Below are positions 3,601-63,600 of a stretch of 64,000 nt of DNA, piece by piece. The notes below the pieces were generated by a model. That model made no database searches, was not told where the DNA came from, and worked only from the letters and a program-made list of their open reading frames with translations. This DNA comes from Ascidiella aspersa (lineage: Eukaryota): the NCBI GenBank assembly GCA_963924565.1, contig OZ004610.1:7006001-7070000 (forward strand), given 5' to 3'. The translations under genes were made by a program, and so were the position numbers. Numbering within the stretch: position 1 is the stretch's first letter; every line of letters starts with the position of its first letter.

Positions 3601-6600
3601 TCTTCATATTAATTTACCAAAAGTTACACAAACCTTGGTTCTGAAAAGACAGGTTAAAGTGACACTTACATGGGACTCGGATTTAGCCAACGAAAATAAA
3701 TTCTTATTAACACAATTCAAAACAAGTAAAACAACTAACGTGGCCGTCTGATGTGCAACGCTTTAATTTTTCTATGCTGTTTATGTGCAAATTTTAAGGT
3801 TGGCGGCAGCCGAATCCGACAAATTTGCCAGGCTTTAAGCTTGGTTAAAATCTTTCCTCCGCGGCCTTCACACCGAACAGTAGATATCTGCGGTTATGCT
3901 GGCCACACAATAACGGATAATGTCATAAATATAAAACAAAATGCAAACTATTTAATTTGACAATAGTAAGCCCCTTAAATAATTCCATGAACGCCGGGCG
4001 AAATATCCATCTTAATGCCAGTGAGAAACTGGCTCTTTTTCTTAAATTAGATTTTATAGAGAAGACGTCATCAACGAAATGCATAAATCACCGTATGCGT
4101 TACTTGAAAACGGTATCTTTCCATTAAATGTTATATCTTTTTTACACTGCTAAGCAAAATACATGCATTGCATAATATATTTGATGAAATTCGTGTATCA
4201 AGCCATATGCGATCATCTAATAGAACAAGAGCTGCTGCTCGGTTTACATGCAGAAGTTAGAAGACTTTAACCCGGCTTGAAACCATTCAAAGTAAATAAC
4301 AAATGCCGGAGAAAAAAACACGAAAACGCGTTTTTATAAAAACGGAGGCTGGCGCTTTACGAAGTGGTCGTGTATGCAGAATTAATTATAGCAGCAGAAG
4401 ACTGTTTGCGTCTAGCTGTGGTTAACCGTCTGGCATGGGGTTCCGATTGGCGCGTCGGCTGTGGGCAAAACTGATTGGCACCGACTGATAACTCCCGCCC
4501 GCGTGTGGCCGTTTTCGTATTTGCGCTTGGAGTAAGCGGGCGGTGTAGACCTGATTGCACTGAGCAGAAATGCCATCTGCTCGTATAGGCATTATGTACC
4601 AAGTTTGGTAACATGCTGCAAGCACATAACTTGGCCATCGTAATACACTGGGATACCATCACGTTCTATTTTTACCTTAGTCTTACCATTGTATAACTAC
4701 TAACTAGCATAACGTTTCACATATGTAGGGGCGATATACCTATAATCCATTTGATCTTGTTTAATCTACATTTGAGAACCGAAACTCGTAAACGTACAGG
4801 CAGCCGTCAAATTAAAGAAATCGCTTCATTATTTGTATTTCGACTCGAACCACACAAAAAATACTTGGCCTGGGTGCACCCTAAATGGCGAAATATAAAA
4901 CAAAAGTAACGAAAGATTCCATTAACACTTAGGGTTCACAGCCGTTTAGTGTCTATGAAAAAAGGCCAAGAACGATGAAAAATGATAATAAATTGTCTAA
5001 AACTAATTTATAAAACTACTTAACATTTCTAACAGGTACACCGAAGGCACCCAACTGAAAAACTCAATGAGTTAGCTCCACCATGCAACATATTAATAGA
5101 TAGAATTCGCTCTTCTGGTGTAAGCGAAGTATAAACCGACGTTTCGGCAGCAGATACCAAGCTGACCTCTTAACGGTTAACCGAGCGATTTCTATCTATT
5201 TAAAAAGTTAATGTTCAAGCTAAATTTCGGTCAGAATTGCCAAAAAAAGATACACGGCATTCGGCGGGATTCGAACCACCGACCTTCAGAACCGCGTACC
5301 TGTTCTTGCGCGGCACCAGGCCGGCCAGGTCCTCGCCGTTGTGCTTGCAAAAGCTGATGATGAGGGAGAAGACCTCTTGCCTGTCTCGCTCGCAGCTCAG
5401 GATGGCACACAGCTGGTTGTGGATTAGGGTAAGTCCCTCCTTGTCGCTGAGGATGCCGCACACAGTCAGCTGTACGACAAAAATTTGTGAATGAAAATAG
5501 TGCTGGACAAGTGGTACATACAGATAGCGATCCTTAAGCGTTTTCATAGGTTCGTTTTCGGTTGGACAAACGTAAAGGAAATTTAGCTTGGAATTTGAAA
5601 GTTAAGGATTGAAAAAAATTAATGAAAAAAATTGTTGTACTACCGCACTTTCTGGACAAATACCTCAAGCCACACACAAAATAAATGCAAAGATTAAAAA
5701 GTAGGGTTTTTAAGACTTTTTAATACGCAAATCAATTCAAAGACATCCAACTAATTTACAATTACTTAAGGACTCTGTTGCAACCATGTGAACAGCCAAA
5801 GCGCGGTAGACTGTAAACATCGGTCCCAGGGGGGGGGTGAGACAGACATACGCGCGTCACACATCAGGACAAACAGACAACAAACAAGTTTAATCAGAAT
5901 CGTGTACGACCAAATACGAGGAGTCGTGCCGTGAGACGTTGGGTGGTATAAAGACCGCCCTCCCGCCTGGAGCAGACTTGGACAAATAGATTTATTTTAG
6001 TTTTTTAAAATTAGATTAGAATTAAAATTAGAGCATTTTAGTTTTTCTAAATTAGATTAGAATTAGAATTAGATTGTTTTGAGTTTTTCAAATTATATTA
6101 GAATTAGAATTATCGAATTCCCAAAAAAACATATTTCAACTAGAATTTGAACTAGAATCACATTTAGTTTTTACAACCAATTTAATTTAATCGCAAAGTA
6201 TTCTTATAAGAATGTGAATGGTAAATATGTGTGTGCTAATTTTTAAGCCTTTTTATGCTTTTTAGACTGTAAAAATTACACACAAGTCGTACCAACCAAA
6301 AAGTTTTAATTGAAATTCTGTGTTTCAACTGAGTGACTAAAAATGCCGTTGGACAAAGTAGCAGTTTTGGAAAAATCCGAATTAGATTAGAACTAGAATT
6401 AGAGCACACAGGCAATTCATAAATTAGATTAGAATTAGAATTAGCCGCATTTTGCTCTAATTCAATGAATTAAAAAACTAGAATTATCTAGTTGTCCAAG
6501 TCTGGCCTGGAGTTAAGGCTGCTTTTCAGTTATCCTCCTACCCAGGCGCTATACTTGTGTAGAGGAATGTTGGCGTCTGGCGCGCGTGAGAAGCCTTTCA

Positions 6601-9600
6601 ATACGCAAGTCAATTTAAAGACATCCAAATACTTTAAAACATGTAAAGACTTCCCTGTGAACAGCTAAACCGCAGAAGACCGCGAACGCATCGGCCCAGG
6701 GAGGGCGAGACAGACATACGCGCGTCACACACCAGGACAAACAAGCAACAAAATAGTTTAATCAGAATCGTGTACGGCCAAATACAAGAGGTCGTGCCTT
6801 GGGACATTGGATGGTGTGAAGACCTCCTATACCTCCCGCCTGGAGTTGCTAGTGTTGCTTTCCAGTCAGAGGCCAGCCTCCTTTACAGGCGCTATACTTG
6901 TGTACAGGAATGTTAGCGTCTGGCGAGCGCTAATCTAATTTCCTGTGGCTGTCGGAGCACGCCGACATCGCAGACCCGGGAATCGAGTTTAACACGCGCT
7001 TCTTTTTGGGTTTTTACAGATAAACGTGTACGGCAGTCATGATTGCGCCGCCCGCTCACGACTATAACTTGAATATTCGCGGGAGGATGAATTCGAAATA
7101 TTGTGTCGCATTCCAGCCATTTCGTTTTTTTTTTATCTATTTAGCTATGCACATTTTGAAGCTTTCTTTTTAACGGAGACGGCTTGCTGGGACTTGATTC
7201 AACGCCCAAACTTTTTTTCTTGTTTTTTCACACATTTCTTTTTTTCGGGCGGGAGGGGCTAAATTGAACGACCAAGATTTTATTTTTTCGTTTTTCACAC
7301 ATTTTTTGATAGGGGAGAGGGTTCAAATTCAACGCTAAAAAGGGTTTAAAAGGCTCCGGTGTTTATAACTTACAATTTTAAGGCGACGGGTAGAAATAAA
7401 GCTTTGTTTTACATGCCAATCGAAAATTGTCGATGATAGAAACTCCCCCTAAACACATAAAATCAAAATTTCAAGAACTGCACAGTCGAACAGATACCGT
7501 TCAACCAAAAGAAAAACTTCTATAAAATTGATTTCAGACAACCTTTGCGCGTATTTGAAGTCAAAGAGCCCAACCTGAAGATTTCCTCGGGCCAGTCACG
7601 TTGAAAGTGTGACGAACATGGAAGTAATCCTCGTCAAAAAGAAACGCATTTGTTTCCATTACTGAGACCCAAACCTCTGACACTGTCGACAGGTTAGAGC
7701 AACAGGGAAAAACCACACGTGGGGCCACTTGCAATGCATTAAGAAGCGTCGGAAAAGCGACCAACCGCAAACGGCGCCGTCTAACGCGCATTAAGCGCCG
7801 CACAATGGCGTCGAGTTACATCTGCTCACACCTGCACTGTAGAGCCCAAACAACGGGCACATTCTGTTGTGTGGTCTATGTGGGCGCATCATGCGGTTGG
7901 GACGAGTTGCTTAAAGGGCAAATCAAATAAACCACAGTCAGTGAGTTATTTTTTGTTTAACCTTCAACAAGCGACTGAGTGTTGTCTTTTTCGCGGTTTA
8001 GTTTTCATCGCCTAAATACTTGGCAATAACAAAGCAAATAGAAAATAAAGCAAAATTACGACAGTCAAAATTACTGGTAGAAATAAAGCAAATTACGACA
8101 GTCAAAATTACTGGTGAATAGTTTGTTTTATAAACATCCACTGCGGACTAACCGCAGGTTTTACCCTGCTGTATGTTGTTGGAATTTTGATATTTTGCTC
8201 CGAAGTAATGGTAAACCATAGGGTGCGTTTTCAATAGCCGCTTTAGAAAGGAAATTAGCAAAAAAACAAGCCATTTAATCATATTTTTGTTAGCCTAACA
8301 TATAATTGTTTTCGCTTGTAAATTGAGGATTCAAAATATGCTCTATACTTTGCTGCTGGTAAAACGAAATCGAAAAATTATCAGACACTTTTAAAAGCAG
8401 AATTTTCCAAATAAAGAATAATTGATTTCGAAAACATGTAGCATTCGAAGCATTTGGGATAACCGAAAAAATCTAACAAATAATGATACTTTACACAAAG
8501 CTGCGGCGTGCCAGCGTATGGCATATAAACCGGTGAAACGAACCTCGTTAAAACAACTACCACCAGAGGTGCTAAAGTGTCGGAAATCAATAGGGTAAAA
8601 AACGTTGATGAGAAACACGCTTTTAACTAGCAAACGAACAACTCGGTCTCCTGGGCATTCTAAACCGTGAAGCACACGAACTCGGGTGTGTGGCCTTATG
8701 AGGAGTTTGTTTGCTGATTTGCTAAGTCAAGACGCATGACATTGCCAATCCAATCGAACTGTTCAATATCTGTGGTAAGATTCACACCGTCCAAAAATAA
8801 GTACGAACCTCAAAGTAATGGTAAGGATTTACTTTTTAGCAGGCCAAGTCAAGTGTCTAGTGCAGTGGTTCTCAGCCGGGGTGCCGCGGCGCCCTGGTGT
8901 GCAATTTCTAATGCTCTAGGTAGGGTGTCGAGGGTATTTGAGAAGATTTAAGAATCTAAAATTTGCTCAATTGGTAAGCTTCTTGATACAACTAGTGTAC
9001 GATTAGAGAACATTATATCAAATGACATTTTCCTACATGTTTTAAGTTGATTGTGTTGTTCCAGTTCCATTTATAATGACATTTCAGTAAAACAATCAAC
9101 GAAAATTCTAGTCGGGGTGCTGAAAATCTATTTATTATTTTTGAGGGGTTCCGTAAGCTCTGAAAGGATAAGAATTACTGGTCTAGTGAAAACTACTTGA
9201 TCACCTGCAAACTCTAACGCGACATTTTAACTATATACCTAGACCTAGACGGGCTTATCGAAAGTACACGTGTCCGGAGTTTTGTAGTTAGGTAAACCAC
9301 AATCTTGTTTAACGTTGTTTTTAACAACGCTTATGAAGTTCGAATAGGTGGTCGTTTCCGCATTGCCGAACCGCGAAAATACTAGACTTTATGAGCATGT
9401 TCAAACAAATATCGTGTTACGGTCGCTGTGTATCACTTGATACAGACAAATCCGTTTTGTTTGTATTTGCTTGCGTTCAAAAAAATAAATAAATTACCAA
9501 AAAAACTTAGCGTCTAGCGCTAGGCCATCTAAGAGCAGCAGTCCACATCGCTAACAGATTTCAAAAATAGGGAAAACAAACAACCCACTTGGGTAAATTT

Positions 9601-18600: not shown

Positions 18601-21600
18601 ACAATTTTAGAGTATTCTTTTTTCGTAATTGTTCACGAAAACATGAAGAAAAACTTGTCCATATTTTTCCTATCACGCTCTTTTTTCAGGTTCATTTCTA
18701 CAGGTTAGATATTGGCATAAAGCAAAGCGTAATCAAACTGCCTGGACTTGTATTTAAAACCTGCTAAAAAGGATATATGATCTAATCGTCGACGATGGAG
18801 CTTTAACTTAAAAGCGGAGCTAAAAAGGATAAAAAAAAAACAAAGAGTCGCTGTATCTGGTGCCTGACATAGAAGCATCAAAAAACATCAAAAGACCAAG
18901 GTGAAAAAACAACGCGCGTGAAAACATGCGAACGAAAGCTCTGCATCTCCTGATGGTAATTTTCGCCGCTGCTAGCGCCGCGGAGCCGGAAGCGGTCCCA
19001 GGAAGCAGTGACGTCACAAGTCCGGCAAGTGGCGCCCACTTGCGGCGCCGGCCGCGCTACACGGTTACCAGCGGCAACCAGAGACGCTACTACCAGCATT
19101 ACGGCTTCTCAGCACCGAGCGATTTGCTGGCTCGCTCGTTCACTGTGAACAGGCAGACGATTAGGCCCGAGCCTCGCTACACTTTTCCACACAGTACTGT
19201 GAGCCGCACGTCGCATTACGCACACCGGCGCAAGGGAAAGCAGCGCTACCAAAAGTTCGTCAAGCAGAGCATCGTGTCGGCCATGAAGAGGTAAAAATGC
19301 CCGCGCCACTGGTCAACAGGCGATCTGTTTTAAGGGTGGATTTTTTTTTGTTCTTTTTATGATATCAGTTTGGTGCCGAGAAGATGGGCGGAGGTTTCGC
19401 TTTTGGGTTAAGCGTTGTATTTATTTGTTAATTAAAATAAGATATATACGTTAAGGAAAGGCTTGGTCTGTTTTAGCCCGAACCGGGTGTATTTTTTGGC
19501 ATTTATTCAGCTCGGTGCCAAAATGGGCGGAGGTTTCGGTTTTGGGTTAAAAGTCGTGTTTTTTATAATTTTTTTAACGATAAGAAATACAAGGACATTT
19601 CATTTACCAAATGTGGTCGGGATTTTATCAGGAATTTTCTGAGAGATTTAGGCCTATTCATCTGAAACATGCCACCCTTTAAACAGTAAGTAAGGCTGCG
19701 TAACAGAAAGCAGTTTTTCTCGTCAATTTTGTTCGTAGTGGTAGTACGGTAGCTACTAGTATTGTTAAAGGTAAATGATAATAATAAGTATCAAACCTCA
19801 GTAGCAACAGAATAATTGGCCGATACACGCATTTGCAAAGCTGAAAGAAAACAGCATTCGAGTCTTGCCAGGAGATATTCTCAAATTAGCTTGCGGCTTT
19901 CAATCAACAATCTATATTCAGCCAAACATGTCAACAGGTGTGCGCCACAATACGTCAATCATTCCAAACGCATTCTTTCCACGGACAGCGGCGCTACGTA
20001 AGTCACGAACAGATTCGCTTACGTGTCACGCCGAATGGACGACTTTATACTTTACAAGCGGAAATCCAACTCGGGCGGTGGCGCTTCACTCAACACCTAT
20101 TATACACCTCGGGAGTACAATCTCGGCGTATAAGAAAGCACACGCACCCCGGCACATAGCACACTACTAGGCAAATACGGGCCCGTCGTCACCTCGCCAC
20201 TTCACCGTTTATAAGCGAATTATAGGAATGCAAATAAATGTCCGGCCGAGGCTGGATGCCCTTTTTGACAGTGGGAAACCGTTTTCAATAGTGGACGGGC
20301 ATCTTGGTTTTGAGATCAGAAGGTTGTCAAACTGGCGTTTGGCTTGTTTTTTTGGCGAGGTCAAGCGTTTTTTGCACGTGAATGAATGTTCTGGAAATCT
20401 GATGCATGGACATGAATGCAGCTTCCAAAGCAAAACAAGAAAAGTCAACATTTAAGGCCCAATTCGAACAATATTTAGTGTTTTTGTCATTTGTTTCGTG
20501 CAAAAACCTAGGTCTGAGTTAACTTTTGGCTATAAGCGTGAATACTGCTTTCAAAACTTGCGTTTTATTGATAACGCATTATGATTGATTCAAGCCTTTT
20601 GCATTATTAGGTAGATTTCTGGAAATATCGCAATTTTAAGTTCAAGGTGACCTATTTCGGTGCACTTGTTCAAGACGTGTATTGCCTGGATCGAACTTTC
20701 GCCTGTTGAACCGAAGCGAAAACAACAATTCCAATTGCGTCGCAATTAATCGATCAATCAAACGACAATATAGCTGCTCCTGGCAAATCGTGTAGAAGAC
20801 GATATAGGCACCAGCAACACGTAGGTGTGTCCCGTCAAAGGCACATTCATCAGCCTGTCGAACTGATAGCTGCCCGGGAAATAAGCTGGGCACGTTGTCG
20901 AAAGGTCAGGCAGGTACCGCCGGTCCTTTTACGCCCTGGCTATCTAATGTCTATTTCTGTCGCATTACTTAAGCCCGAATTGCGCCCGACGCCGCGCTTC
21001 GTCGGTTTGAAGGGGCGACTTAGGGGTGTAGGGGATGGGGGCAGGGGTACATGAGGGTGCATGGGCCGATACCCTACACCGCCGCACGCAGCCTGGCCTG
21101 TAAACAGCACAGCGCTGTGTTTTTAAGGTAATACAAAAAAACCAGGGCGAAAAAGAACGGAATTTTCGGTTGCAACGTCCCTGACTGGGTTGCTACACAT
21201 TTTATTAAACAAATTTGGATTAAAAAATCATAATTTGCAAAGACCTAATTTTTTACCAGTCGACGGTGTATATATTTCAAAAATAAAACAGTTTAAATGT
21301 CATAGTCAACACAATGGTTTAAAAGTTTGTTATACTACGACACTTTTTTGAAAACATACCTTAAGTTGCAAATAAAACCAATTCAAAGACATTTATAAAA
21401 AAAATAAAGTTTTAAAGATTTCTTAATACGCAAATCAATTCAAATACATTTAAAAATTGAAAACCTGCTTGAATTGCGAAATTGCGCAGAAAACAGACAG
21501 CGCAATGTAATGTACTTATACCAAACGCCGTGTACCCCTTCAAAAAGCAATTATATCAAACACAGCGTTGCAAAATGGTAAATTGCGCGCGCAAGTTCAA

Positions 21601-42600: not shown

Positions 42601-45600
42601 TCACGTAGGGTGGAAAAAGGAACGGCCTGGGCGTTTTGAATTTGATAGAGGGTCAATTTTTTTTTACAAACACTTGAAATAAGATGTTACTGGCGGAAAA
42701 ATAGGCTTGGAAAGAAAATGCCGGCGCCTTTTAAAGATTCGGTCCGAATTGTTTTCGGTCAATTATTTTACAAATTTTGAAATTTGTTTTTTCAAATAAA
42801 ATGGAGTTTATGATGGGAGGTAGACATATACCAGGGTGGAAAAAAGTGCTTCTTGAAGTTACCGCGCAAAAGATTTTATCGACAAACAACAAAAGCGATT
42901 TTGTTGATGCCACAGCCCGATAGGCCATCGTACTCAAACCAATGGCGAGTCGAACATACAAATGCTGTTGAACGTACAAAACTTGAACATACAAAAGCTG
43001 TTGACAGCAGCGTTCAGGCCGACACGCGCCAACAAACGTATATCGATCCGTCAAACTCTCCGCGATAAAACAGCAAAGGCTTTATTTACGAGTTCCGCCC
43101 TGAAGCAATTACGCTGGCATCGGAAGCGGCTCTTTTTCATTTAGGCGAACAGGGGCTCACTTTGGTTAAGTGCCTGTTGTCGGCACACACTTGAAGCGTC
43201 TATAGGGGCCCGCGCCATAAACGCCACAGCCTTCAAAGTCGCAAAGGGGCCTTATCAGCAGGGCACACACAGGACTTTACTTGTTTGTCAACGCACAGAA
43301 CAAAGACTATGGCGTATCTCTCTCGCGAAGCTTCCGTTTGGCCGGAACGAAATTCGGGGAAATGTTTGCCACTAGCGGCTCGAGACGGGACGATACGTAT
43401 ATGGCGGGGGTCATTTGGGGTCGAACCCCGCGCCACTGGGGTTATTTAGGGTCATGGGTAAAAGAGCTTGAATGGAAGATGGGGGGGGGGGGGGGTGGAT
43501 ATCCGTGCAAACAGCAATGTTACGGAATGCAAAACATTTTAACAGTAGTTTTGTACGCCTTTATAAACTAATCTTGTCAACTTCTGGTAAAGCTAAAAAA
43601 AACACAAAGCACATCGCTTCAATCGTTCGGCAGTATTTTTTCGCTAGCTTTTATCATACAGACTTTTTCAACGTCGAAACAGGCATGCGATAATAATTGA
43701 TCAACCTTAATGCAGAAATGACTCGACATATACCAATCGAACCCAATAGCAAAAAGTACGTCACTCAAACTTGGCCGTGTAAATATATAACGTCAAAACG
43801 TCACGCACTGAATGAAGTTCGACATGGGAAACGCGAAGGCCGTATAAATGTTAGCTTAATAAAAATCACAAGCATGGAGACCTGCTTCTTAAGCTGACGT
43901 CAACCTTGAAACAGCAATTTTATTTCTCAGGCTCAAAACTCAATCACGTCTAGCCTTGATTTGGATGGATTTAAGCCAATCACAATTACAAGGCTGGCTC
44001 CAACTTCGCAGGATTTGCTGGTGAGTGTTCTTGTGCGATACGAAAATTAATGTTTAAGGCAATTAGGTGCGATGTTAACATTTAATTTGGCAAATGCTTT
44101 ATTTCAAATGCTTGCAAAAAAATAAACTTATGCGAGGATCAACCCAATTTATCACTATTATATACAGTGAAAATCACGCAACATTTAGTAACTTTAATTT
44201 TTAGAGGATATATTGAAATAAGCAAAATAATGATAAATACCTTTATCCTACGGAAAAATACTAAAAGTTCACACTAATTTGAAGAAAGTGTAGGTCAAAT
44301 ATTGATGTTAGAGTGCTAAACAATTTTTATGCATTTCTGACATCCTTGAAAGGTAAATTTCTTACAAAATAGCAAATTTTAATAGAAGGTTACTCAACTT
44401 TTTAACGCTTAATAACTACACTGGCTTGATAACATAGAAAACATATCCTGTGAACCACTGTATCGGATGGCTTTCAGTATCAGATGGCCGAATTTTTGCC
44501 TTCATAAAAGTAATTTTTTTGCCTTTCATGTCATCATAAGAAATACGCAATAAATATAGGAAGTATCAGGCATTCCCAAATAACCGTATCTTTTCCGAAC
44601 ACATAAACACAGGCGGCCATCGCGGAAACCGGATTCCAGGATCGCCTGGACCGCATGTCGCGCTCGTTACATCAACACGGTCGCAAGCTGAACAACGTGT
44701 CGAGCGTTGTGAACAGCGTGGCCGAGGACGTTCGGGCGCTGTCCATGACCACCGCCAATTATTTCGAGATCATCAACCAGCAGGCCCGCGATATACGCAG
44801 CCAGAACGAGACCATCAACCAGCTGCTGAACAAGGTGAGCTCTATATGTACTATTCTTTGGGCTCTTTCCGGTTCGAGTTTGACCAGTTTTTCAAAATGT
44901 GAAAGCGCAATGGAGTTTAAATATACATTCAGTCCTAAAACGTTTTATATTTAATTAAACACTTTTCTTTGAAAAAATTATTACTTTTCAAATATACACT
45001 AATATTTCAATTAGGGCCTCATGGACCCTCTAAAACTAGTTCCCCCCCAATGGGTCCATGGACCCCAGTTTAAGGACCCCTGGGTTAAACGCATCGAAAG
45101 AAAGATATTTTCTTTTTTGAGTACAACACGACATAAACCAGTCACAGTAAACTAACAAGCTTAGAAGTGATCTCGCTTAAATTAACCTTGCCTTGTCGTT
45201 TCAGTTCGACCGTCAAGAAAGCATATACCACGCGCACTTCGACTACCAACATCAGATGACACAAAAGCTGATGGAGGCAGTTATCGGATTCGCAAAGCAG
45301 GTTTCGCTTCAGAAGCCACTGGAGCAAAACCGAGGTATTAAACAAGCGTAATAACTGTCCGACTTTTCGTGTTGGTTTCAAGGTAAAATGTAAATCGAAA
45401 AGCGTGAATATATAGGGATTTTGGGGAAGAGGTAAATCAAGTTTATTTTTAGGCTGTTGTCGTTAGTAAAGAGAAAGGCTACAGGATTATAGGATAAGTG
45501 TTTTATAAAAGACTTATGTTTTCTTTGTAAAATATGACAAAAAGGCGTGTACATCGAAACATTTTTTAAAAGTACAACGGTTATGTTGAGCAGAATTTTT

Positions 45601-48600
45601 TTGTAAACGTTCTATATTTTTATCAGTAAACTGTTCCAAAAAGGTGTTCTTATGGGAAGTTTTTTATAGATAAAACGTCATGTGTGTCAAATATCCACGA
45701 AATGTGACTTTTGTTCGCTTTTACTGTAAGGCGATTTTCATGGAAATTAGACACAAAACAAAGGGGGCTTTTTTGTAGCGTTATTTAAAGAAAGGTGTCC
45801 TTTGTTTGGCATGAAATAGAAAAGGTCGTGCACGTATAAAAAAATAGGGGCGCATATATGGAAATTTCTACGTTGCTTTCAAAGTAGGGCGTCATTTCTT
45901 AGGCTCACACCGTAAACAAGCAGAACGGCGCCGCCTTATTGGGAAGCGAAATGGGCGAAACAGCAGATCGACAGCGATAGTCACCCACACGCTCGTATAG
46001 ATAAAGCAAAAACAAAAAACAAGCCCTGATTTCGTGATGACGCAATCAATCTCGACGGTTCAGGGTGCGGTTTGCGGGCGCGAATTCGCCACAACGACGA
46101 TCGGCCAACCAGCAGGGATCTCGTTGGCTTATTTGCGAGGACAAATCGACCTGAATTACACCGGGCGCCAAAAATAGCGTGGGACGCGCAAGTCGAGTCG
46201 ATTTCTTTTTATAGACGCTCCTCGTGCACTTTGCACGCGTTAGGTCAGCCCGACCCTGCCAAGAACGCCTGTTCACCTTTACGCAAACGATACGCTGGCT
46301 TCGTAATGGAAAGCCTGGCAACAGAAAAGCAAGGGAAAGCAGAATTTTCGGCGGTAAAATTGTTATCGCTATCGTGGAGCGCCTTGCAGGAAACGTTCGA
46401 AGAGTACATTACCGCAAGTTTTTTTTCGCTTACGTATAGTGCTGCGAAATCTGCCTTGGGTGGTTTTATAGCATAACACCAAGGCATTGCTTCCCATGGG
46501 CCAACGACTTTTATCTCAGCAAGTAAAGAAACGGGATTTTTTTAACATAAGGGCGGATTGAGGGTAAAAAGAGGTCAACACTCATTTCAGACTAAGTTTT
46601 TGAACTGTTGACCGGCTCAAGCGGCCACATTTAAAGTAGGCTGCTTTCATTTTTACCAATGGTATTCTTTGCCATTTTAATTAAAAAATCTCAATTAAAA
46701 GGTGAACGCACTCGAAGAAGTCTGAAGCCGGCTCATTTAATTCAATTTCGAATTAGAGAAATGCGGCCGTTACTTTATTGGTTGAAAACTAGACAGAACA
46801 AGGCAACTGGTAAACACCGTGCCAGACATTATATATAGATAATGTGAATTCAAGTTTAACATGCTAACCGACTTGCCTATTTGCAACACTAATAGCTTGT
46901 TTTGCAAAATTAAAAATGGTTTCGCGGCACATTCAAAGTTAAGATTTCGAATCGTCCACTCGTTAATTCGGGGCCAATTCTCCGATTTACACACACTCGC
47001 CCAACTAGCGATTGCCAAAAAGTTGTTATAAGACCTACCGGACTTAATTTGTTTATGTACATCATATTACGTGACATCGTTGCACTCATAATCTATTAGT
47101 GAAAATTTATAACAATAGAAGCTTGAGCAACTATAAAACTGGTTATAGAAGTGCGTCAAACAAACACCCTAGATATTCATTCAATGCTCCTGTAAACAAT
47201 CTAGGCGGGTGCTAAGAGAATTACGCAAACGCATAGAAATAGAAGAGCACGGGTTAAATCATTGGTAAAAACAGTTATGTAACATGAAATTTCCAACCGG
47301 CGAATACAAATTAAATTCAATATCATCCGTTGACAAACCTCTAGGTAAAAAGGCCAAAAACTTCATTCGAACGGGGGCACTGAAGCGCCCAATATAGTTA
47401 CAAATATAACCGCCTGACCCTTGACCTGCTGCAGACTGTCACGACCTCTGGATGAGCGGACAGACGCACAGCGGCGTGTACACAATCGTAAAGGACATGC
47501 AGCTCAAGCCTGTCTACTGCAACATGACGGCAGTCGGTGGCTGGACGATCATTCAGCGACGAAGCGACGGAACACAGGAGTTTAACAAAGGTATGGTTTG
47601 CTTCTCATAGCCCCGATTGATGTTTAACCATGACGTGTAAAGACGTTTTGTGACGAAAACATGCCGTTTGGTGTTGGAGTAATTTTTTTTGTTGTGATTT
47701 GTCCCAAAATATTTTTTTTCTCATTTCTTACGAGATATAATTTAACATTGAATGCAACGTACATCAGTTGACCTTCGGATGAACATCCTATTTCATACAC
47801 CAGTTACATGTTAATTATAAAACTAAAGTCGTGTTCAAACGCAAAAAAATGTTTTTAAAGCTTTCCATGCACCTTAAACTATTAAAAGTGGTTTCATTTA
47901 ATATATTTGTTATATATTATTTTTTGCAAAGTTAATAGCAGCGCACATATATTTTAGTTCCATTGTTATCAGACATCAATACTCAAGGCTACACATTCAC
48001 AAATAATTTGTTAATAACCCAGATTGGCCTTGAATTGCTTTTCGACATGAGTCTGTCTTCCGCCAGCAAATTGGTTACGTTTTCTGATTTGCCTTGTTTG
48101 TAAAAAACATAAGTGAAACGACATTATAGTAGTGCCATAGGTAAAGAACGTTTCAACATTTCGAAAGAAAATGTTATTTAATATTTTCGACCCTCCCTAA
48201 AAGACAATTAATGGTTTATTTCTAAATTAAGCGTCTGTAAAATTCTCCATTGAGCCCAATTGGATTTTGAATCAGGAATAACTAAATTAGCTGATTTTTG
48301 CAGATTTAACAAAATATGACAAACAAAAATGTAAACAAATCCAGTTGCGCGGAAACCTAAATCCAGTCGAAAGAATTTGAATGAAACAATCTGCGATAAT
48401 TAAAAGTGTAATACGCTTCAATGTGTAATAGTGACGTTCCGAGGCAAAATTGTAACGCTTCAAAGCGTAATTGTTACGTTTCAAGGCGCAATTGTTACGT
48501 TTCAAGGCGCAATTGTTACGTTTCAAGGCAAAACGTGATATGTTACATTTTAAGGGGTCAACGACTACGAGAAGGGCTTCGGCAGCATTTTCGGCGAATA

Positions 48601-51600
48601 TTGGCTTGGCTTGGACATGATAAGGTGGCTGACACACGGCAGGATTTACAGCATAAGAATTTTGCTGGAGGACTGGGCGGGACACCAGCGATACGCCAAC
48701 TACGACCGCTTCATGGTATACGGACAGCACTACGTTCTGATGGTAAGTGGCGGCGGTGCGGTTCGAACGGGCGACCCCGGGAATATAGACTCTGTTGTCT
48801 AAACAAGGGTGCCAACGACGAAAAATCGGCTAATCTTTAAAAGAACAAGTTGTTTTGTTAAGTTTTGTAACGGTTAAAGAGGTTTCAGGTTTGGAATGAA
48901 TAAAAAAAATATTTTCATTTTATTTTTCGTTATATAAATTCACCAGGTGAAACTATGAACTTCTTCAAGTGCATATTCACGACACACAATAGTTCCTTTG
49001 TTGCTCACTGCGATCAGGCTCATGTTACCCTTTTACCGCGAGTTGAAAATGACGGAAAAAGCACAGCATTACAGTATACAACGACAAAGACTTACACCCA
49101 TAGGGGTGGTCTGTATCGCGAGATCAAACTTACCCCAGGGGCTGGATTTAACCGGGTGACCTGCGCCAAGCCAACCATTGCGACCTCGCTTTTACAGTTA
49201 ACACGGGAGCCTGGATTGAAATCAAGCTCAAAACTACCCAAGCTCTGCCGGATTGATGTATACGTAACACTCTATAAGCAACACCAAGCAAGTTTGAGCT
49301 TGATCGCTTGATCGCAAGATCGCGAACTGAACGATTACATACGCGTTGCAACTGTTGCGTGATCGGGACCAAGTGTCGTACTGGGTTCGCATTTCAAGGG
49401 CTTAAGTTGGTGTTGATATAACAGCATTTCGCCATGCGCGCGATTCTCACGACCGTTTGCCCATCGCTCATGTCTATAGAGTATAGTACAGGTTTCGTTC
49501 GAGACGCTGCGGGCCCTTACAGATTCGAGTGCTGCGCCAACGGACAGGCGGCCTTGGGTTCCGGCGCCGTTGGGCCACAGAGATGACGTCATATTTTGGG
49601 TGCAGCGCCAAAAAAGCAACAGCGGCGTTGCGACTGATAATAATTAATTGACAGCAGGCCGTAGGGACGCGATTACCTGTTTTGACTCGCGGTGAACGTT
49701 GCGAGAAAAACAAGCTAGCGGTGGTTTGGCCTTGCAATAGCAAATAAGGTGTTGGCGCGAGGTTTAAGGGCCGCTCAATAGCTGGCGGCTGGAAGGGCGA
49801 ATGGCAGCGCCGTCGTATTTTCCATTCGTAAACACGCGCGCACAAAAAAAGCCTTTTCCGAGCGACAAATAGCTCGGTCGTCGAGCCGGCCATTTGGCAT
49901 CGGCCTTGACACGCGTGTCGAGCTTTCGGAAGGCAAGGTGAGGAATAATTGCTGACATCCCGGCCGTAGCCAAACGACTAGCGACGAGTATAGGGGATTT
50001 TGGCTGCGAATTGGTCGGCTAGTGCCAAAATGCACCGGCGTATGTCGTCGCGATGTAGACAAACCGCGACAATAACGAGGCAAGCTCAAGCTTGGTGGGC
50101 GCCGAATTTCAATATATATAAGTCTTGTTGACTACAAGGCCGCGGAAAAAAAGAGGCGGTTGCAGCGAAATGAACGAAATGGTAAAAAGCGAAAGCCTCG
50201 ATCAAGTAATACGCCTTACTGAAAAACAAACAATTATTCGCGAGGCTCTAAAGCAGTGTTTATCAGCCTTTTATGGCTTGCGGCACCCCCCAGCAATAAT
50301 AAATAGATTGCGGTAATTCACTATAATGTCGCAGTAAATGGAACTGGGGCAATACACATCAAATATATACAACGTATGAAGTTATTGCATTTATCCACTC
50401 TTATCTTACACAAAAAATTGTAAGAGTTGAGCAAAAACCAGATTCTTAAAGATTCTGAAATATCTCCAGGTACCCTTGAGAATTAGAAATGGCACACTAG
50501 GGGTCCACTGCTCTAAAGTTTAAAATATAGTAGTAAGACCCTGCGGTTTCGCATTGAGGCGTGACTTTAAGGGTCAGCGGGATATTGGAAAAACCCTCTT
50601 ACATTGACAAACGCCTTTGTAGGAAAGGGAAAGCGTATTTCGTCGCAAGCTTTTAAACACGGAACTCGTCAAAAGACAACAACCGAACATCAGCAGCGCA
50701 GTCGGCGACCTATTCCATAATTTGTGGCCGCGAAAGATTCAAAGCGAATTTTTTGACACCAAATTCTGCGATATTCACGCCGGGAATGTTATTTTTCATT
50801 GTAACACTACGACATTTCGGCAAATGACGTCACTGGCGTGGTTTTGGCTGAGCATTCAAGCCGAAGATCTTTGGCGGGAAGGCACTGGAACGCAATCGGG
50901 GTCGGAGGCAAAAATCCCAAGGAAAGCAGCAACCTGTAAATTTACCGCGCGTAATATGCCATACTGTCTCTCGCACGACAAAAGACCACCGTCGAGTCAA
51001 AGCCGCTATTCAGGCCGTGACACTCAATATGAGCGAACGTGTTAATCCGAGTATGACTTAGCCTGAACCTTCCACATGCGTACAGTGCTCTTAGGCTTTG
51101 GCTGTGGTTTAAAATCCCGACTGGGTGCAATGGAAATGCGGTTTTCGGTCGGCCCAAGTCAACAGTTTGCTTTTGCGCTCGTCAAAATTTGACGAGTCCA
51201 CGAAATACGAGCCCACGGACAGGTGCTGCAGAGAACTGGCGAACGGCTTTGCCCGAAAAAGGGCACGTTATGCATTCTTGCAAGTGCGTGTCGATAACCT
51301 TCCACTTTCCACTCATGTTTTTGGCTTTTTTCGTCAGTTTACGTGGCTTCGCAAAAACTTGACCTCAGTAAATGTCGAAATCAAGCAGAGTTTCGCATCG
51401 ACACTTAACCCTTGTAATTTCGCAAACCAACATAATTTATTTTTTTGTTTTCAAGGTGAGCGGATACAGTGGAAATGCGGGGGATTCTCTGACTGGGAGT
51501 AACGAGGTCCCGTTCAGGGCGAGAAGACAGAGCAGGGAAAATACCATCACACGCAATTCAGACTGCACGTCGCGAAGACAAGCAGGTGCATATCTTAGTT

Positions 51601-54600
51601 AAACTTTTTTTTATAATATGGCGTACCATATAGGAAGTAAAATTATTTTCTTTTTAATTTGCCAGAGTGTCCTATACTTCAATTTGCATAAGGTTACACA
51701 TTATGTCATTGTCCTCAATTAAACCTAAAAAAAATAAATTGCCAAAAAAAGTTTAAATCCGTACACACAGGTATTTCTAGCTTTTCAACGTCCAGAAAGC
51801 TATATTTAACGAACAAACATTCAGCACAAAACTATAACCAACATTTTTACGGTATTTGCAACGCTATACTGACCAAATAATGTTTTGCCGTCTGGAAGAG
51901 TAACAAAAAACTAAAATAATCCACCTTTTCATTTTACGAATAATTCCTAATCTGATCAAGTGAACAACCTACACCGTTTAACGAACGAATTATTCACCGC
52001 CTCTCTGATTCTAAAAAAGCTCCCTGGTTCTAAAATAATTTGCTTAGCGTATATGTAATCATTTTGGGCCCGTCTCCTAATCAAATTGCGGGCAAAACAA
52101 CGCATAATGACCAAGTGAAACAACCGACGTAACATATATGACCGAGTGTTTCTTGTCCCGGCAGGCTGGTGGTTCCCGCGGGACTGCGGCCAGGCAAACC
52201 CGAACGGGCCGTACCCAGGCGACCCGCGTGACGGCGCCAACAGCAAAAAGGCCGAGGCGCCGAACAAGTACAGCTACATGATCCCCGATTTTGAGTGGAT
52301 GCGCTGGAGAAGCAACCAGTTCCCATTGCGCAAGGTTTCACTGCAGATCATTCCCAGAGAAGCGCTCATTGAAAGTCCATTCTCGACTATCGGCGATACG
52401 AACGGCAACGCCGATGGATCCGATGGCGGCGACACGCAGGAAAGCGACGCCGGTAAGAAACGGGGTCAAGGGTCAAGGGTCAACCGGCGCGGTTTTTGTG
52501 GTTAAACAGGACGAATTAGGTATAGAGTGCAAGAACTAGATTTTTTAATTTTTTCTGCACAAAATCTAAACTAATACGCAGGAAAGCGACGCCGGAAAGA
52601 GGCAGGATTTGCTGGCTTCGTGGATAGACCGTGATTATAAAAAAAATTAATCCCGCAATTCTCATGTAACAAAAACTCGGCTTACCTTCTAGAAAGAGGC
52701 TTCTCTTAGTAAAACAATCTATTGCTCCTATAAAACAACATATTTTACTGCCGCAAATTTAAATGCGATATCTCAAGGCAGTGTCTCTGTTAGCACCTGT
52801 TTCGCATGTTGCTCCGACCAAACATATCAAGTATAGAGTGTTACAACTATAATTTTTTTTTTTTTCAGCAGAAAATCAAAACTGTAATGCAAAACAAAAC
52901 CCTCGAGTTACAACAAACAAGGAGAATTGTTCAGATATCAGTCCAGAAATAAGGCCGAACAAATCAAACGACAAATTAAATATTAAAATTATTATACAAA
53001 CAAAACTGCGCTGGAGGATCGTTTACTTTTTGCTACAGCACTCAAGCGGGTCTCTGTTCACAATTTTCTGCTTGTTTATGTGTCATGTAACATGTTTAAA
53101 AACAACTAATTTTCTTGCATATATGTTACGCTCTGCTGACATGTGAAAGTAAAGCAACCAAGTGACCATAAATATAAACTGTAGAATATTAAGGTTTGCA
53201 TGGGAAATGGCATTTCTTTGGGTGTAGTCATATAGCCTTCATTAATAGTTTTTAGCACAATAAAGCATTTTTAGCAACTAAGAATACAATTTAAAGGAAG
53301 TTCACATAATACAAACTAAACATGTCCAAATAAACCAACGAAAATGGTTGTGAAAACATGCCAGCCCTTTCTCTTTTGTAATTCCGTGTGCGTATACTAT
53401 GACAGGCATGGAAGGGATCATCATTTGCAAATATACTTTTCGCCGACGATTAAACACAGTCGCGGCTTTAAGTTTCGCAGGCCTTAATTTAGCCGAACCG
53501 CGTTTTCCCGGGAAAATATTTACCAGTGATTTCACGCGCAAGGCCTCGCCCAGATTTACGATAAGGGCAGACAAAGAGACAAATCGCGACACCCCGGCAA
53601 TCGATTTGATTCAAAGTCAATATTGACGTTTGAGGACTGGCTTAACAGTGACACATCTGGACCGCACAAAGGGCTAAATCACCTCCGTGAAAGAGTGAAC
53701 ACTCAGACGGACGTGTTGTGTGAAAAGTCAATGTTAAGTGGAAAAGCATTTGTCTTTTTTCAAAGAAAAATCGTCGTTTACCTATAGTTGTATTGTAAGA
53801 GTTTCGTTCCAAAAACCTAGCTTTTAGCACTCAGTTTGACATGAAACGGCTATCTTCTAAACTGGTAATTAAAGCGTATATTTCTAACACGTTGTACTAG
53901 CGAGATCTTTAAAACATAAAAAAATAAAATAAAAATGCGCTTTTAAAAAACAAACTGTTGATTTTACTAGATTGACTAGATACATTTTGTGATAAAGACT
54001 TGCTTCTAACAGAATAGCGTTGTTTTGCATTTCACTTGAGCTTTAAACATTGTAATGGCCCAAGTTTAAATAAAAATTATCAAATGTTGTTATTTCACGA
54101 TTGATGTGACTATGGGGTATCGTACTCATCGTATGTAGGCATAATAATCATTTCTACAGCTACAATCTCACAAAATGCATTGCAGGCGACGCGGCCGACG
54201 ACTCACAAGAAAGAGACACCAGGACAAGTCGCGTAAGAGAAACCGCACAAGCAACCACCACCAACAATAACAACAAGAACAATCGCAACAGCAATAGCAA
54301 CAACAACAATATCAACAGGCGCAAAAACAACAACGCTAGCAAAGGCGGCGCAGGGTCGAGCAAGGCACTGAGGCGCATCTACAAGAGAAATAGCAGATGA
54401 CCGTGCCGCGTGCTGGTACTTGGCTACTGCGAGACTATATGACGCTGCCCTTGGGTCGACCTTGAGTGTGAAGGCAACACGTGGGCGCGCGCGCAAAAGA
54501 CCTATGCTTCTTTTGCTGCTGCTGCTGTTGTGCGCAAAATTCGACTCGTGTCGCGACGAGAAATCGAACCACGAACCCTGGGAAAATGCGGGACACGTCA

Positions 54601-57600: not shown

Positions 57601-60600
57601 GGCGACCTCAGCATTTCAGCGATGAAAACAAAACAGCGGGCGCTACAGAACAAGCGAATCTCGGCCGAACCGCCAGAAAGTTGTCAGAAATCGTGATAAA
57701 CGATGACGGTCCTTCGTGGAATTGCGTTTACGTGAATGCAGCGGGATTGGTTTGAATCTGCGATTCTTAAACTGGGGGTAATTACGTCACAAGGTGCTGA
57801 TTTGACAATTTATTGGTTTCGGTGGAAACGTGTTTTGCTTGCGGCGAACTTTTGAGAAAAGTGTTTGTACTTAATAAAAAAGAACTGCTTTGTCAACGTT
57901 TATAGTACACGGCAAAGTGATTAGAGATGTTCGATACTTGACATTTTGACTTTGATAACGATACCGATACTAGAGATAGTCCGATATATCGGTTTGCCGA
58001 TAATATCGGCCGATATTTGGCTTCTACCGATATATCGGTATCGGTAAATGTAGGCCGATACTTTTGTCGATATTTTAGTACCAAAAAATGATATCGTTTT
58101 TCCTGTACAACAAACAACTTATCAATATTTTTATTAAAAAAATTTGGTTTTAGCATCAGGTCAAGTTAATATGCAAAATAATAGTTTAATAATTAATAAA
58201 GGTTTATAAACTAAAACATTATTAGGATTTTTTTTTGATAATTGAAGTTTTGAACATTTCTGAGGTATATAAAAAAAATCGGTATCGGTATGGGTTGAAA
58301 AATGTAAAAAATCGGGTATCAGTATCGGTCCAAAAAAATAGATATCGGTCGACCTCTAACCGATACCGAAGCCTGCTATTTGTGACAAAACTTATAGCGC
58401 TCCTTTCAGATATCAAATGACGCCATGACAGTTCCAAACCAAACATAATAGAATTAATTTAAACGTTCAAGGGACAAATTTTTCTTTAGCGTTAAGAAGT
58501 TGAGTTACGTCCAGCTGTTAAGCTACTAATATTATTTGACGTTTCTTATCCTCTCTTATTTCAATGTTTGCAAGATACTAAAAAATAAATCGAATCTTGG
58601 GTACACTATGCACGGATCTGTAATGTAGTTTGATAATAAATTGCAAAGATAAAAAGGTCGAGTAGATCGTATCGAAACTACTTAATCAAGATGATGTCAA
58701 TCTACTCGACCTTTTTTGGCTTTGCAATTTATTATCAAGCTAAATTGAATCTTGATAGAGCAAATGAGGACAACGATGCCTGCTACCGTCAGCAAAGCCA
58801 ATTATATCGACCATTACGCCATTACTTCGAAAATGGCTCGTGACGGTGGTTTCGGCTTGAATAGAAATGCCGGCAAAAAGTCCATTAGCTGTTACTTTGA
58901 AACGCCTTGCTTCGATAACAAAACAAAAACAGCAACGGTCGCAAGTTGCAGGACCGACTTTCGTTTCCTTTATCAAGTGCGCGTGTCAAGATAATTGCCA
59001 GCCACCGTAAACAAACGTATTCACAGAGCAAATTTCCTCTGTCTGTTTTGCAAACTCAATGGTGCCATCCTAAATAGGCATACAGTGCTTACTGTGAACG
59101 TTAGCGCGCGCAAAAATAGACATGACAAAAAAGCATAATGTGAAAAACGTTGTTCCTCACAATGCCTTTTTCTTCTTCGTGCCAAAAAAGTCCCAAAAGT
59201 GGAAATAAACCCTCAAACATAACTTAAAACGTAACTAACTTAAGTTACTTGTGCAAGCTTTTGGTGTAAATCCACACTTTCTTGCCAACTTTTGCAACAA
59301 TGTTTTTCAAACACACCGTCTAGAAATGTTAACATACTGCCAAACCGCTTATTATCTAGTTTTGTGTGGGAACACCACAATTAGGGGCCTGGGGGGTCGC
59401 GTAGGTTTTCGAAAACTGAAAAGGGGGTCGCGACAGCAAAAAGGTTGTGTGAACCTTTGATGGAAAAAATTAACAGGCTTCCGCAGGAACGTTCTTCTTT
59501 AGTTGCCCTTTGCACAATAACTTTAACGTTTTCAAACTTTTTCTTTTTAGAAAAAACAAATGAGGTAAAGTTGACGATCGTGGTAAAGCTAATTAATTTT
59601 AGCGAGAAATCAACTGACAGAGAAAAAGTATTGGAAGTTTATTAAAACAAGAAAACACGGCATTCAAAATTAAATTGTCCGCGTTAATAGTCAAGCATTT
59701 CGATTAAAACTATAGACAGTTGCGTGCCAGTCCGGGTGACACCAAAACTTAAAGTCAAAAAGTTTTCGGTGAATAATTAAGATAGGCTACACTAAAAAAA
59801 AAACAGGCCGCTAAAATGCTTCGGCAGTTTTTAATTAAACTTTTCGACTGCCGGCACTTTAACAGGGGCAGAATTACCCTCGAGCCACTTTTATCCGGAG
59901 CAAATCCCGACGGCAAAACGCGCTTACACATAACGTACAGGGGCAAGTTCCTTTTGGCGAAAGAACGCATGTTTACAGTCTCGCCGTCAAGTGGTGTAAT
60001 GACCCTTGAAGCTGGCAAGGCCTCAGACCAAAGTCAAGCGATTTACGTTCGCTTCGATAGAGCGAGCAATGCGGGCAAATTGCGCACTTGGTTTTCGGTG
60101 AACCGCGACGGAAGTCGAAGTTTTGGCCCACACGGAAGTTCGGGCAAAGGCATCAAACGGATCGGCAAACGGCTCTTGGCCATTTTCGGTGCATCTGGGA
60201 GATGGTATAAGACTTGGGATTCTTCGTCCAAACCAATTTTCTTGTATTTTTCCACGTTTATTTTGGCGAGGCAAAAACTAAACGTATATATTAGAACGAG
60301 GTTTTGGCGACCCAATTCTTTTCACTAAACTTCTTTAAGCAAACAAAACATAAGATATTGGCATAAATTAGTTTAAATTTAATTAATACAAGTTATTCTG
60401 CACTTCTATCAAGCATTTGAGAAATCTTGCCCAGAATAAACCTCATTTAATCTAACCAGAAGGTAAACTTCTGCAATCGTCGACTCAACCAAATAAGGGC
60501 CAACCCTGTTTTGGCGCGACCCGTAGGTTGAGAAACACAGGACTATGAAAATGCGGGGTGTATTTTTTTAAGCAACAAAACAACCTTCAACATCAAAGTG

Positions 60601-63600
60601 TAGACAATACGCGAAACCAGTGTACCAAACTGCATTTCACAGTAACATGGTCGATTAAGAAAGCAAAAAAAATTATCCTCAAGACAACATCGATTTTCAA
60701 TAAACGCTACAGAACAAACATAATCACAAGAAAAGCTGTTTTAAACGACATTAGGCCTTGCAACAAATATTTATGAATTCCAAGCAATTAATATTACAGA
60801 AAACATGGCTAAATCAGCATGTCTGAATACCCTGAATGAAAATATGAACCTGTAGAAGGTATCCTGCAATTTTTAAATCAAGATAATGTACTACATCCAA
60901 CATAACAAATTGGAAGTTAAAAATGCCAAGTAGTCCACATAGCACGTATGGTAAACTAAACTATTGTTTTCAACTCACAAAAAATACAATTTTCAAGCTA
61001 CAACCTGCTCCCGTCTTACGACTAACCACTGTCCTGTCAAACACTGTTTAATAATCTAAACCATGAACTGCAACACAACAAACAAACATGCAACTCACCT
61101 CTGCCAAGAAGCGCAGGTCGGTCCTCACTTTGCTGATGTTGGTCAAAAAGAGCTGCAAAAATACAAGTTGAATAACTTAACACGACAAGAAAAACAAAAA
61201 TACATATGGAAAATTTAGCAATATATATGCCTCACAGTCTTGTGCCGAAACGCAATTTCACACTTGTGATCAAAGGCGTCAAGTTGCTATATAGTTCGTT
61301 TTGGTATAAAAATGCACGAATGTAGGCAAAAATATACTGGGTCACCTACAATTAATAAGAAAATAAATTTTAATTTTTTGTTGTTGTTCTTAATAACTTA
61401 ACAAGTGATTTAAAAAAATTGTGATTAAAAATTATAACTTGTTAAGTTATAATGTAACAAGCGATTGCAAGTTTGCGTAAACTTTTTTTGGTACTTTGGC
61501 GACAGCTAGCGGAGCGCAATGCGTACGGGAAAATAAGTATTAATCGTTGGCACAAAATGGGCGGCAGGCCACGAACAAGAACTTACTTTCAGCCAGTTGA
61601 GGACCCACAAAAAGGCGCAGCGGCTGAACAAGTAAAACAAATAATATTCCTAATGCTAGCCTCATTCGAAACCTGTATAACTTCACCACTAAGAGCGGTT
61701 CTGGTAGGAAGGAATTGACGACAAATTGTATAGAAGTAAATTACAATAAAATTAATTGTATGTTTGAACAGGTAAAAGCTTTAATTTGCTGGAAGAAAAT
61801 AGAAATAGCACTTAATCAAAAGTGCACAGCCCACGGGTTAAGGAGCGCTAATCTAGATACGTTTGTTTGCTTTATTTAGCCATTTCGTCTACTGATTGAA
61901 TATTACTATCGATTGAATAGGTAATAACGACAATAACGAGACGAAAACAGCATGGACCACATAAGCTAAACAAGATTAATTTGAATTAAAATAGACTGAT
62001 GATGCCGGATTGGAAATAATATATTTCTCTATTGATGACTAGAACTTAAAAATGACTGATTTTGACTCAGACAAGAAAGTCTAAAGTATATTGCTACAAT
62101 TTGAAGTCATTGTTGTCATTTACGTTAAAGGGCGAGGAGATGTCTTTATATTTTACATAATCAGTTTGCAATTAAAGAACATTTTCAGATATGTCTTAAT
62201 TTCAGTAACACTAGGAAAACTAATACGCTTTAAATCAGCTCTAAGTTTAAAATGACATTCTTTAGCAGCACCCAGCGGACGGGCGATGCTGCTAATCACG
62301 TCCGCACGGTGGCAAAATAACACACAGACGACCAACCGATTTGTCTTCGATCCTGGAGAGGCAGACGCGCTTGAAGGCCTGAAAGAGTTGGGGCGTAAAG
62401 TCCTGGTAGCGTTTGTGCATCAGAGAGCACATGTGGATGGCGCACGATACGTCGCTCATCTTCAGCTTAGCGTCAATCAGAGTGGACACCTGCAGGACGA
62501 AAAATAAGAAGAAATTTCAAAATAGGAATCGATCTACGAAACTGCGTTTACGCATTTGTTCTATCGAACATTTCCGCCGATTACAGCATTATTATACTTT
62601 TATGAAGCATTGACGGGCTGGTAATAAGTTACAATACCTAACTATCTAATTAATGCTCTAACCCAGGGGTGGCCAACCTTTTCCTATAGTCGCGGGCCAA
62701 AACCAACCTCAGAAACGTCTCTGCGGCCGGAATAATTTTAAACTGACAATTAAACATTTAAAAATCAATGAGTTTCAATGAGTCGTACAAGTTCATGACG
62801 AGATGGTAATTTTCTAACCTGAAATCAGGGATGTGGAGTCGGTTAAAAATAACCCAAGTCGAACTCTGACAAATAAATTAACTTGAGTCAGCGTCCGGCC
62901 AAATGTGCAATGAGTCCCAAAGTCCGGGTCCTACACTACAGCCGTATTTCACCCGTTTACTGAACAAAATTATGGTGGATATTCAGCAATTTACTCACAA
63001 GGGTGTCATATAATTCATCCACCCATGACAAGTAAAATGTTCTACCATACCATGCTATCCAAAATTACAAGTTGCGGCCTTATCAGTAAATTGATACTGT
63101 GCATGCTCGGGGGTAGTCTTACTCAAGTCCGGAGTCAGACTCTAGCAAAACAAACCAAACTCTATTGAGTCCCGAGTTTGACTGCGCCTTAGATTAAAAC
63201 AATATTAGAAAATTATAAAATAAATGAAAACTTACAACTTCTTGGATGTATCTTGTCAAATTGAGAGACTGAAATTCGTTTGACAGTGCAGTGCGTTGTT
63301 GCTCTGTTAACTTGCCCTAAAGAAAAATCATTATATGCTTGATTATTGTCTTTACGGCAGCTTTTACAAATTACATCTATTTTGTAATTTACTTGAAAAT
63401 CATAACCAAATGGCCTTGCTTATATTCACAGAAAATTATTTACTGAGACCTTATGCAGGAAATACACAATAAGATCTACAAAGAGGGAAGTTTATAGCAA
63501 AGAATCTACATTAACATAGTATTAACACCATTAAAATAAGAACGCCAAATACGCAATAATAACCACAACAGAATAAGATATAAAATTGTCAACCGTTCGG

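Follow-up and report, generated by a model that had tools for sequence, protein, structure and literature searches.

The window analysed here is a 64,000-nucleotide stretch of Ascidiella aspersa DNA (assembly GCA_963924565.1, contig OZ004610.1, positions 7,006,001 to 7,070,000 of the forward strand). Its minus strand carries a part of UPF2, the gene of a core factor of nonsense-mediated mRNA decay (NMD), and its plus strand carries a predicted angiopoietin-like gene, called the guest below, which lies inside one UPF2 intron. The positions of all features are collected in Table 1, and the exon names used in the text are those of the table.

UPF2 and its 55.6-kb intron

To locate the UPF2 exons, we performed tblastn searches with ascidian UPF2 proteins (P0001 and P0071, the latter being UPF2 of Phallusia mammillata). 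When exon e was used as the query of a library-wide phmmer search, full-length UPF2 proteins were returned, and the best of these (P0001), when searched again, gave its ascidian relatives. The homology searches were done with exons taken singly, and the spliced models were checked for phase and junction codons by a script. The UPF2 exons found by homology were all open and colinear, with 60–90% identity per exon to the Phallusia protein; taken together, the exons of the window were 75% identical to UPF2 of P. mammillata and 69% identical to that of Ciona intestinalis, which places the genome among the phlebobranch ascidians. UPF2 orthologues bear the Pfam domains PF02854 and PF04050. Single UPF2 exons of the window (48–58 residues, too short to score) gave no Pfam match; among solved structures, exon e matched human UPF2 (4cem_A, E 2.1e-14).

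The original prediction described UPF2 as interrupted by a 55.6-kb intron, and this is what we observed: 55,629 nt separate the GT donor of exon d (61152–61099) from the AG acceptor of exon e (5469–5300). The same prediction had the junction running from phase 0 to phase 0 without loss of residues, and this was confirmed in two ways. In separate searches of solved structures, exon d was aligned to residues 141–155 and exon e to residues 156–210 of 4cem_A; the two ranges are consecutive, and therefore no residues are missing at the UPF2 junction. Similarly, the Phallusia protein is unbroken over this position, where it reads ...ISKVRTDLRFIAE and then ITVGGILTDKEGL, the residues directly before ITVGGILTDKEGL being RTDLRFIAE.

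The neighbouring UPF2 introns had been put at about 0.6–2.7 kb, in agreement with the 564–2681 nt measured here with the small exon f included. Besides the giant intron, the window has UPF2 introns of 564, 746, 1184, 2681 and 1906 nt, and beyond the window they are approximately 0.3–3.8 kb. The giant intron is thus about 15 times as long as the next-largest UPF2 intron and more than 100 times as long as the smallest, and its donor and acceptor rank among the best of the gene. When the intron was scanned by codon usage for coding-like segments on the minus strand, only antisense shadows of the plus-strand exons were seen. A weak tblastn match at 58914–58988 (RTDFRF, E 0.24) lies on the wrong strand and was taken as a chance match. 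We also looked for the recursive-splice consensus in the giant intron and found 0 occurrences, compared with 1.5 expected by shuffling.

The whole genome was then compared with Phallusia UPF2. There were 20 matches, all of them colinear and on the minus strand of one locus (C4:6981198–7070042), and together they covered residues 41–1210. This locus is about 89 kb long and has about 27 exons. No UPF2 paralogue or second locus was found in this genome-wide search, and exons e and c each had a single match in the 308.6-Mb genome. Separate UPF2 paralogues and a second copy of exon e had both been named as observations that would speak against one interrupted gene; the former are contradicted by the single colinear locus, and the latter was found neither elsewhere in the genome nor as a coding-like segment on the minus strand of the intron. 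By these matches, UPF2 is one single-copy gene, and its 5′ and 3′ halves share one locus.

It could be argued that UPF2 is broken at this point, with exons a–d no longer joined to exon e and onward, and that what is left is a pseudogene or two transcription units. The large distance between exons a–d and exon e agrees with such a possibility, as does the fact that the junction is a prediction from DNA. However, the homology searches gave exons that are all open and colinear, with the identity to Phallusia UPF2 stated above, there is no second locus able to supply the function of UPF2, and few splice sites of the gene are as good as those of the giant intron, whose phases match. We therefore consider a broken UPF2 extremely unlikely.

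The guest gene within the intron

The guest was delineated from ATG 18926 to a stop at 52505. Along this chain the phases agreed at all of the 12 junctions, and no stop was found inside the exons or in the junction codons. The minimal gene thus has 13 exons over 33.6 kb, and the coding span takes up 60–64% of the host intron. Every guest coding exon lies within the UPF2 intron (5470–61098), whether the gene ends at 52505 or at 54400, and the guest exons are single copy in the genome.

The N-terminus encoded by guest exon 1, as read directly from the sequence, is basic and then hydrophobic, like a signal peptide. At the other end of the protein, a fibrinogen-related domain (FReD) is encoded by four exons. 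The second of these (48555–48742), when compared with solved structures, was closest to ANGPTL2 (2.4e-12), followed by ANGPT1. The third, corresponding to the profile part 126–170, is divergent and gave no Pfam match by itself. Guest exons 2–9 gave no Pfam domain above threshold; weak sub-threshold matches were to coiled-coil families (Fib_alpha, 0.0035; Laminin_I, 0.014; CENP-F_leu_zip, 0.014). Because these weak matches are all that exons 2–9 give, the coiled coil that would link the putative signal peptide to the FReD is one that we infer.

Ab initio chaining of the exons depended on the thresholds: strict ones lost two FReD exons and loose ones added spurious small exons. The FReD exons were therefore placed manually, with their Pfam positions, their motifs and the splice sites as guides. 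The original prediction had placed a whole secreted FReD gene on the opposite strand of the intron, and this part is borne out by the chain of 13 exons; the 16 exons, the length of 35 kb and the end at 54400 that were also given are compatible with the data, as candidates only. Judging by the predicted chain, the guest is a complete and intact gene for a secreted protein of angiopoietin-like architecture, in which a putative signal peptide is followed by a coiled-coil-like stretch and then by a FReD.

Table 1. Positions of the UPF2 exons, the host intron, the guest gene and the interspersed repeats in the 64,000-nucleotide window
Feature	Position	Strand	Description	Basis
UPF2 exon a	63881–64000	−	Runs past the window end; C-terminal side ...FVKKL; donor GT at 63880	tblastn, sequence
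UPF2 exon b	63236–63316	−	GKLTEQQ...QEV; AG/GT	
UPF2 exon c	62337–62489	−	VSTLIDAKLK...IEDKS; AG/GT; single copy in the genome	
UPF2 exon d	61099–61152	−	AG acceptor; 18 codons, the last RTDLRFLAE; strong donor GAG/GTGAGT	
UPF2 host intron	5470–61098	−	55,629 nt; GT-AG; phase 0 on both sides	
UPF2 exon e	5300–5469	−	LTVCGILSDKEGL...PRKN; MIF4G-1; acceptor ...gtcgtacag; donor AG/GTACGC; single copy in the genome	
UPF2 exon f, small	2576–2618	−	ILVDKFGLELPKSE; between exons e and g	tblastn, splice sites
UPF2 exon g	551–669	−	IISKEKQKIFHNLL...YRN	tblastn, splice sites
Guest gene, minimal coding span	18926–52505	+	13 GT-AG exons, 810 codons	coding-potential scan, Pfam, PDB, phase chain
Guest exon 1	18926–19290	+	ATG; MRTKALHLLMVIFAAASA...; signal-peptide-like hydrophobic N-terminus; in-frame stop upstream	
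Guest exons 2–5	27539–27670, 28009–28152, 30001–30124, 32763–32917	+	Coiled-coil-like	
Guest exons 6–9	33600–33822, 40389–40511, 44613–44834, 45205–45334	+	Coiled-coil-like	
FReD exon 1	47435–47590	+	Fibrinogen_C (PF00147), profile 4–58	
FReD exon 2	48555–48742	+	Fibrinogen_C, profile 61–125; closest solved structures ANGPTL2, ANGPT1	
FReD exon 3	51456–51585	+	VSGYSGNAGDSL...; GYSGNAGDSL motif	motif, splice sites, phase
FReD exon 4 and C-terminal tail to the stop	52165–52505	+	GWWF...CGQANPNGPY...; profile 171–221; alternative donor 52452	
Candidate alternative last exon	54186–54400	+	Asn-rich tail, stop 54400; reached from donor 52452	ab initio chain alone
Candidate extra guest exons	25333–25395, 42393–42515	+		ab initio chain alone
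Interspersed repeat, ~530 bp	5973–6505	.	91–95% identity to many copies, on other chromosomes	
Interspersed repeat, ~390 bp, separate family	57968–58358	.	85–92% identity to many copies, on all large contigs	

Intron flanks and continuity of the assembly

Close to each end of the interval there is a high-copy repeat (5973–6505 and 57968–58358), and the two bear on another explanation of the giant intron, namely that a segment of about 50 kb with the FReD gene was misplaced during assembly into a UPF2 intron that is truly about 3 kb long. The sequence outside the repeats (about 0.5 and 2.7 kb) would make an intron of normal UPF2 size, and the continuity of the interval was judged from the assembly itself. 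Nevertheless, no similarity was found between the two repeats, which thus represent unrelated families, and at 0.4–0.5 kb they are easily bridged by long reads. An assembly break inside the interval would have counted against the intron as well, and no N was present in the window or in the surrounding 114-kb region. In addition, the GC and CpG contents are smooth over the boundaries, and the containing contig is 35 Mb long. We regard such an artefact as very unlikely.

For the repeat at 5973–6505, a first look gave 7,544 candidate copies genome-wide. We noticed that it is bracketed by a direct repeat of 129 nt (5831–5959 and 6699–6827; 86% identity, 868 nt apart), and the whole is possibly a nested insertion, or else a small element with terminal repeats.

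Further genes were sought in the flanks of the intron, where ten long open reading frames (ORFs) gave no credible Pfam match; the domain HTH_Tnp_Mu_2 was matched at 0.0043, below the cutoff. An ATG-started ORF of 170 codons (59816–60328, plus strand), situated in the flank that separates the guest from UPF2 exon d, likewise had no Pfam match.

The observed/expected ratio of CpG was approximately 1.0–1.4 over the 114-kb region, in which the guest and the greater part of UPF2 share this level. A germline-methylation signature was considered as a clue to the nesting, and the ratio, being even throughout, was uninformative on this point. A fall to 0.4–0.8 was confined to the 5′ end of UPF2 (64001–68000, just past the window end). 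We also observed that the codons of UPF2 exons a and b are richer in AT than those of exons c–g.

Additionally, a hammerhead-type arrangement (CUGAUGA...GAAAC...GUC) was seen on the minus strand at 38878–38921, inside a short dispersed repeat (38797–38903) which has two more copies in the window, a direct one at 5053–5159 and an inverted one at 27810–27881. The Rfam hammerhead models gave no match at the gathering score anywhere in the window, and none at E<=10 over 38600–39100.

The nested pair and known nested genes

At the DNA level, the exon boundaries, the phase, the contiguity of residues, the single copy, the integrity of the guest reading frame and the identity of the guest domain are established. 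The locus very probably represents an ordinary pair of host and guest genes, in which single-copy UPF2 has a phase-0 GT-AG intron of 55,629 nt with an opposite-strand angiopoietin-like gene inside. The intron lies in the part of UPF2 that encodes MIF4G-1, after the codons for ...RFLAE and before those for LTVCGIL..., and its size would come from the guest together with the (regulatory) flanks of the guest. Each gene presumably has a promoter of its own, and the guest would leave the UPF2 pre-mRNA along with the intron. Since the guest is intron-rich, retroposition was not its origin; it presumably arrived by a rearrangement at the DNA level, or else the host intron expanded around it.

Several points weigh against this interpretation. 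The junction 61099 to 5469 and those of the guest are predictions from DNA sequence alone, and the contiguity of the locus is likewise taken from the assembled sequence. The N-terminal exons of the guest were derived by ab initio scoring and phase logic alone, and its 3′ end is ambiguous, at 52505 or 54400. Moreover, database searches with exon e and ascidian UPF2 yielded no protein from this species.

In the original prediction the nesting was called unusual, a claim that finds no support. Nested genes most often lie within an intron of the host and on the strand opposite to it, and 91 such protein-coding pairs are common to human and mouse (PMC3933685). The angiopoietin family itself offers five human precedents, ANGPT2/MCPH1, ANGPTL1/RALGPS2, ANGPTL2/RALGPS1, ANGPTL3/DOCK7 and ANGPTL8/DOCK6, in which the guests are intronic and all antisense (PMC6371847).

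The original prediction also suggested a regulatory coupling, in which convergent transcription of the guest over 34–35 kb of the UPF2 unit would lower UPF2, and hence NMD, in those tissues where the guest is expressed. By geometry the two pre-mRNAs are necessarily complementary across the guest span, and in human liver overexpression of ANGPTL3 and ANGPTL8 was accompanied by underexpression of the respective hosts, DOCK7 and DOCK6 (PMC6371847). On the other hand, ANGPT2 and MCPH1 are positively associated, and ANGPTL1/RALGPS2 and ANGPTL2/RALGPS1 are unrelated in expression (PMC6371847). The human pairs are thus inverse in liver in two cases, positive in one and unrelated in two, and nesting is therefore no predictor of interference. 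The complementarity is confined to the pre-mRNAs, as in every antisense nested pair; the mature mRNAs of host and guest have no exon sequence in common, and therefore a special coupling is not required. The sequence shows no feature particular to such coupling, and the recursive-splice consensus is absent from the intron. We consider the coupling very unlikely. That antisense, tissue-specific transcription of the angiopoietin-like gene over 34–35 kb serves as a built-in tissue-specific brake on UPF2 and on the efficiency of NMD in this ascidian lineage is, in our opinion, very improbable, and any effect of the guest on NMD is pure speculation.

The ordinary nested pair is a new combination of host and guest in a familiar arrangement; that the host is an NMD factor, and the size of the guest in relation to a fairly compact host gene, are mildly notable and no more than that. 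In vertebrates, synteny of angiopoietin-like genes with UPF2 is not known. The pair adds a non-vertebrate example of angiopoietin-family genes lying antisense in host introns, and it opens no new question of its own. It also provides a core NMD factor of an ascidian with a correct gene model; with an intron of 55.6 kb, automated annotation could easily make two genes of UPF2 or merge UPF2 and the guest into one.

One of the closest counterparts is human ANGPT2 in intron 12 of MCPH1. ANGPT2 is antisense to its host and, as is predicted for the Ascidiella guest, has several exons and encodes a secreted protein that combines a coiled coil with a FReD (PMC6371847). The location is also alike, a single intron of a broadly expressed host with host coding exons on both sides (PMC6371847). 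The differences are that the present pair has another host and is from a tunicate, and that UPF2 is much smaller, at about 89 kb compared with 237 kb for MCPH1. The pairs ANGPTL1/RALGPS2, ANGPTL2/RALGPS1, ANGPTL3/DOCK7 and ANGPTL8/DOCK6 similarly have antisense guests in host introns, and among solved structures it was to ANGPTL2 that FReD exon 2 was closest. These ANGPTL guests have been called small genes (PMC6371847), whereas the Ascidiella guest covers at least 33.6 kb, comprises 13 exons or more and takes up about 60% of the host intron.

Opposite-strand nesting of a gene for a secreted protein in a host intron is also known from an ascidian. In Ciona, two TIMP genes are nested in synapsin, and the synapsin/TIMP pair is conserved from cnidarians to human (PMC2825198). 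The families are unrelated to those described here, and the TIMP guests are short, with about five exons (PMC2825198). Finally, the LRRTM genes in the alpha-catenin genes resemble the UPF2 pair in that an opposite-strand guest occupies the one large intron of its host (PMC3933685). In human this intron is approximately 50–450 kb long, and the remaining introns of the host are shorter (PMC3933685). LRRTM genes consist of one or two exons, and an origin by retrotransposition is assumed for them (PMC3933685), whereas the Ascidiella guest is rich in introns.

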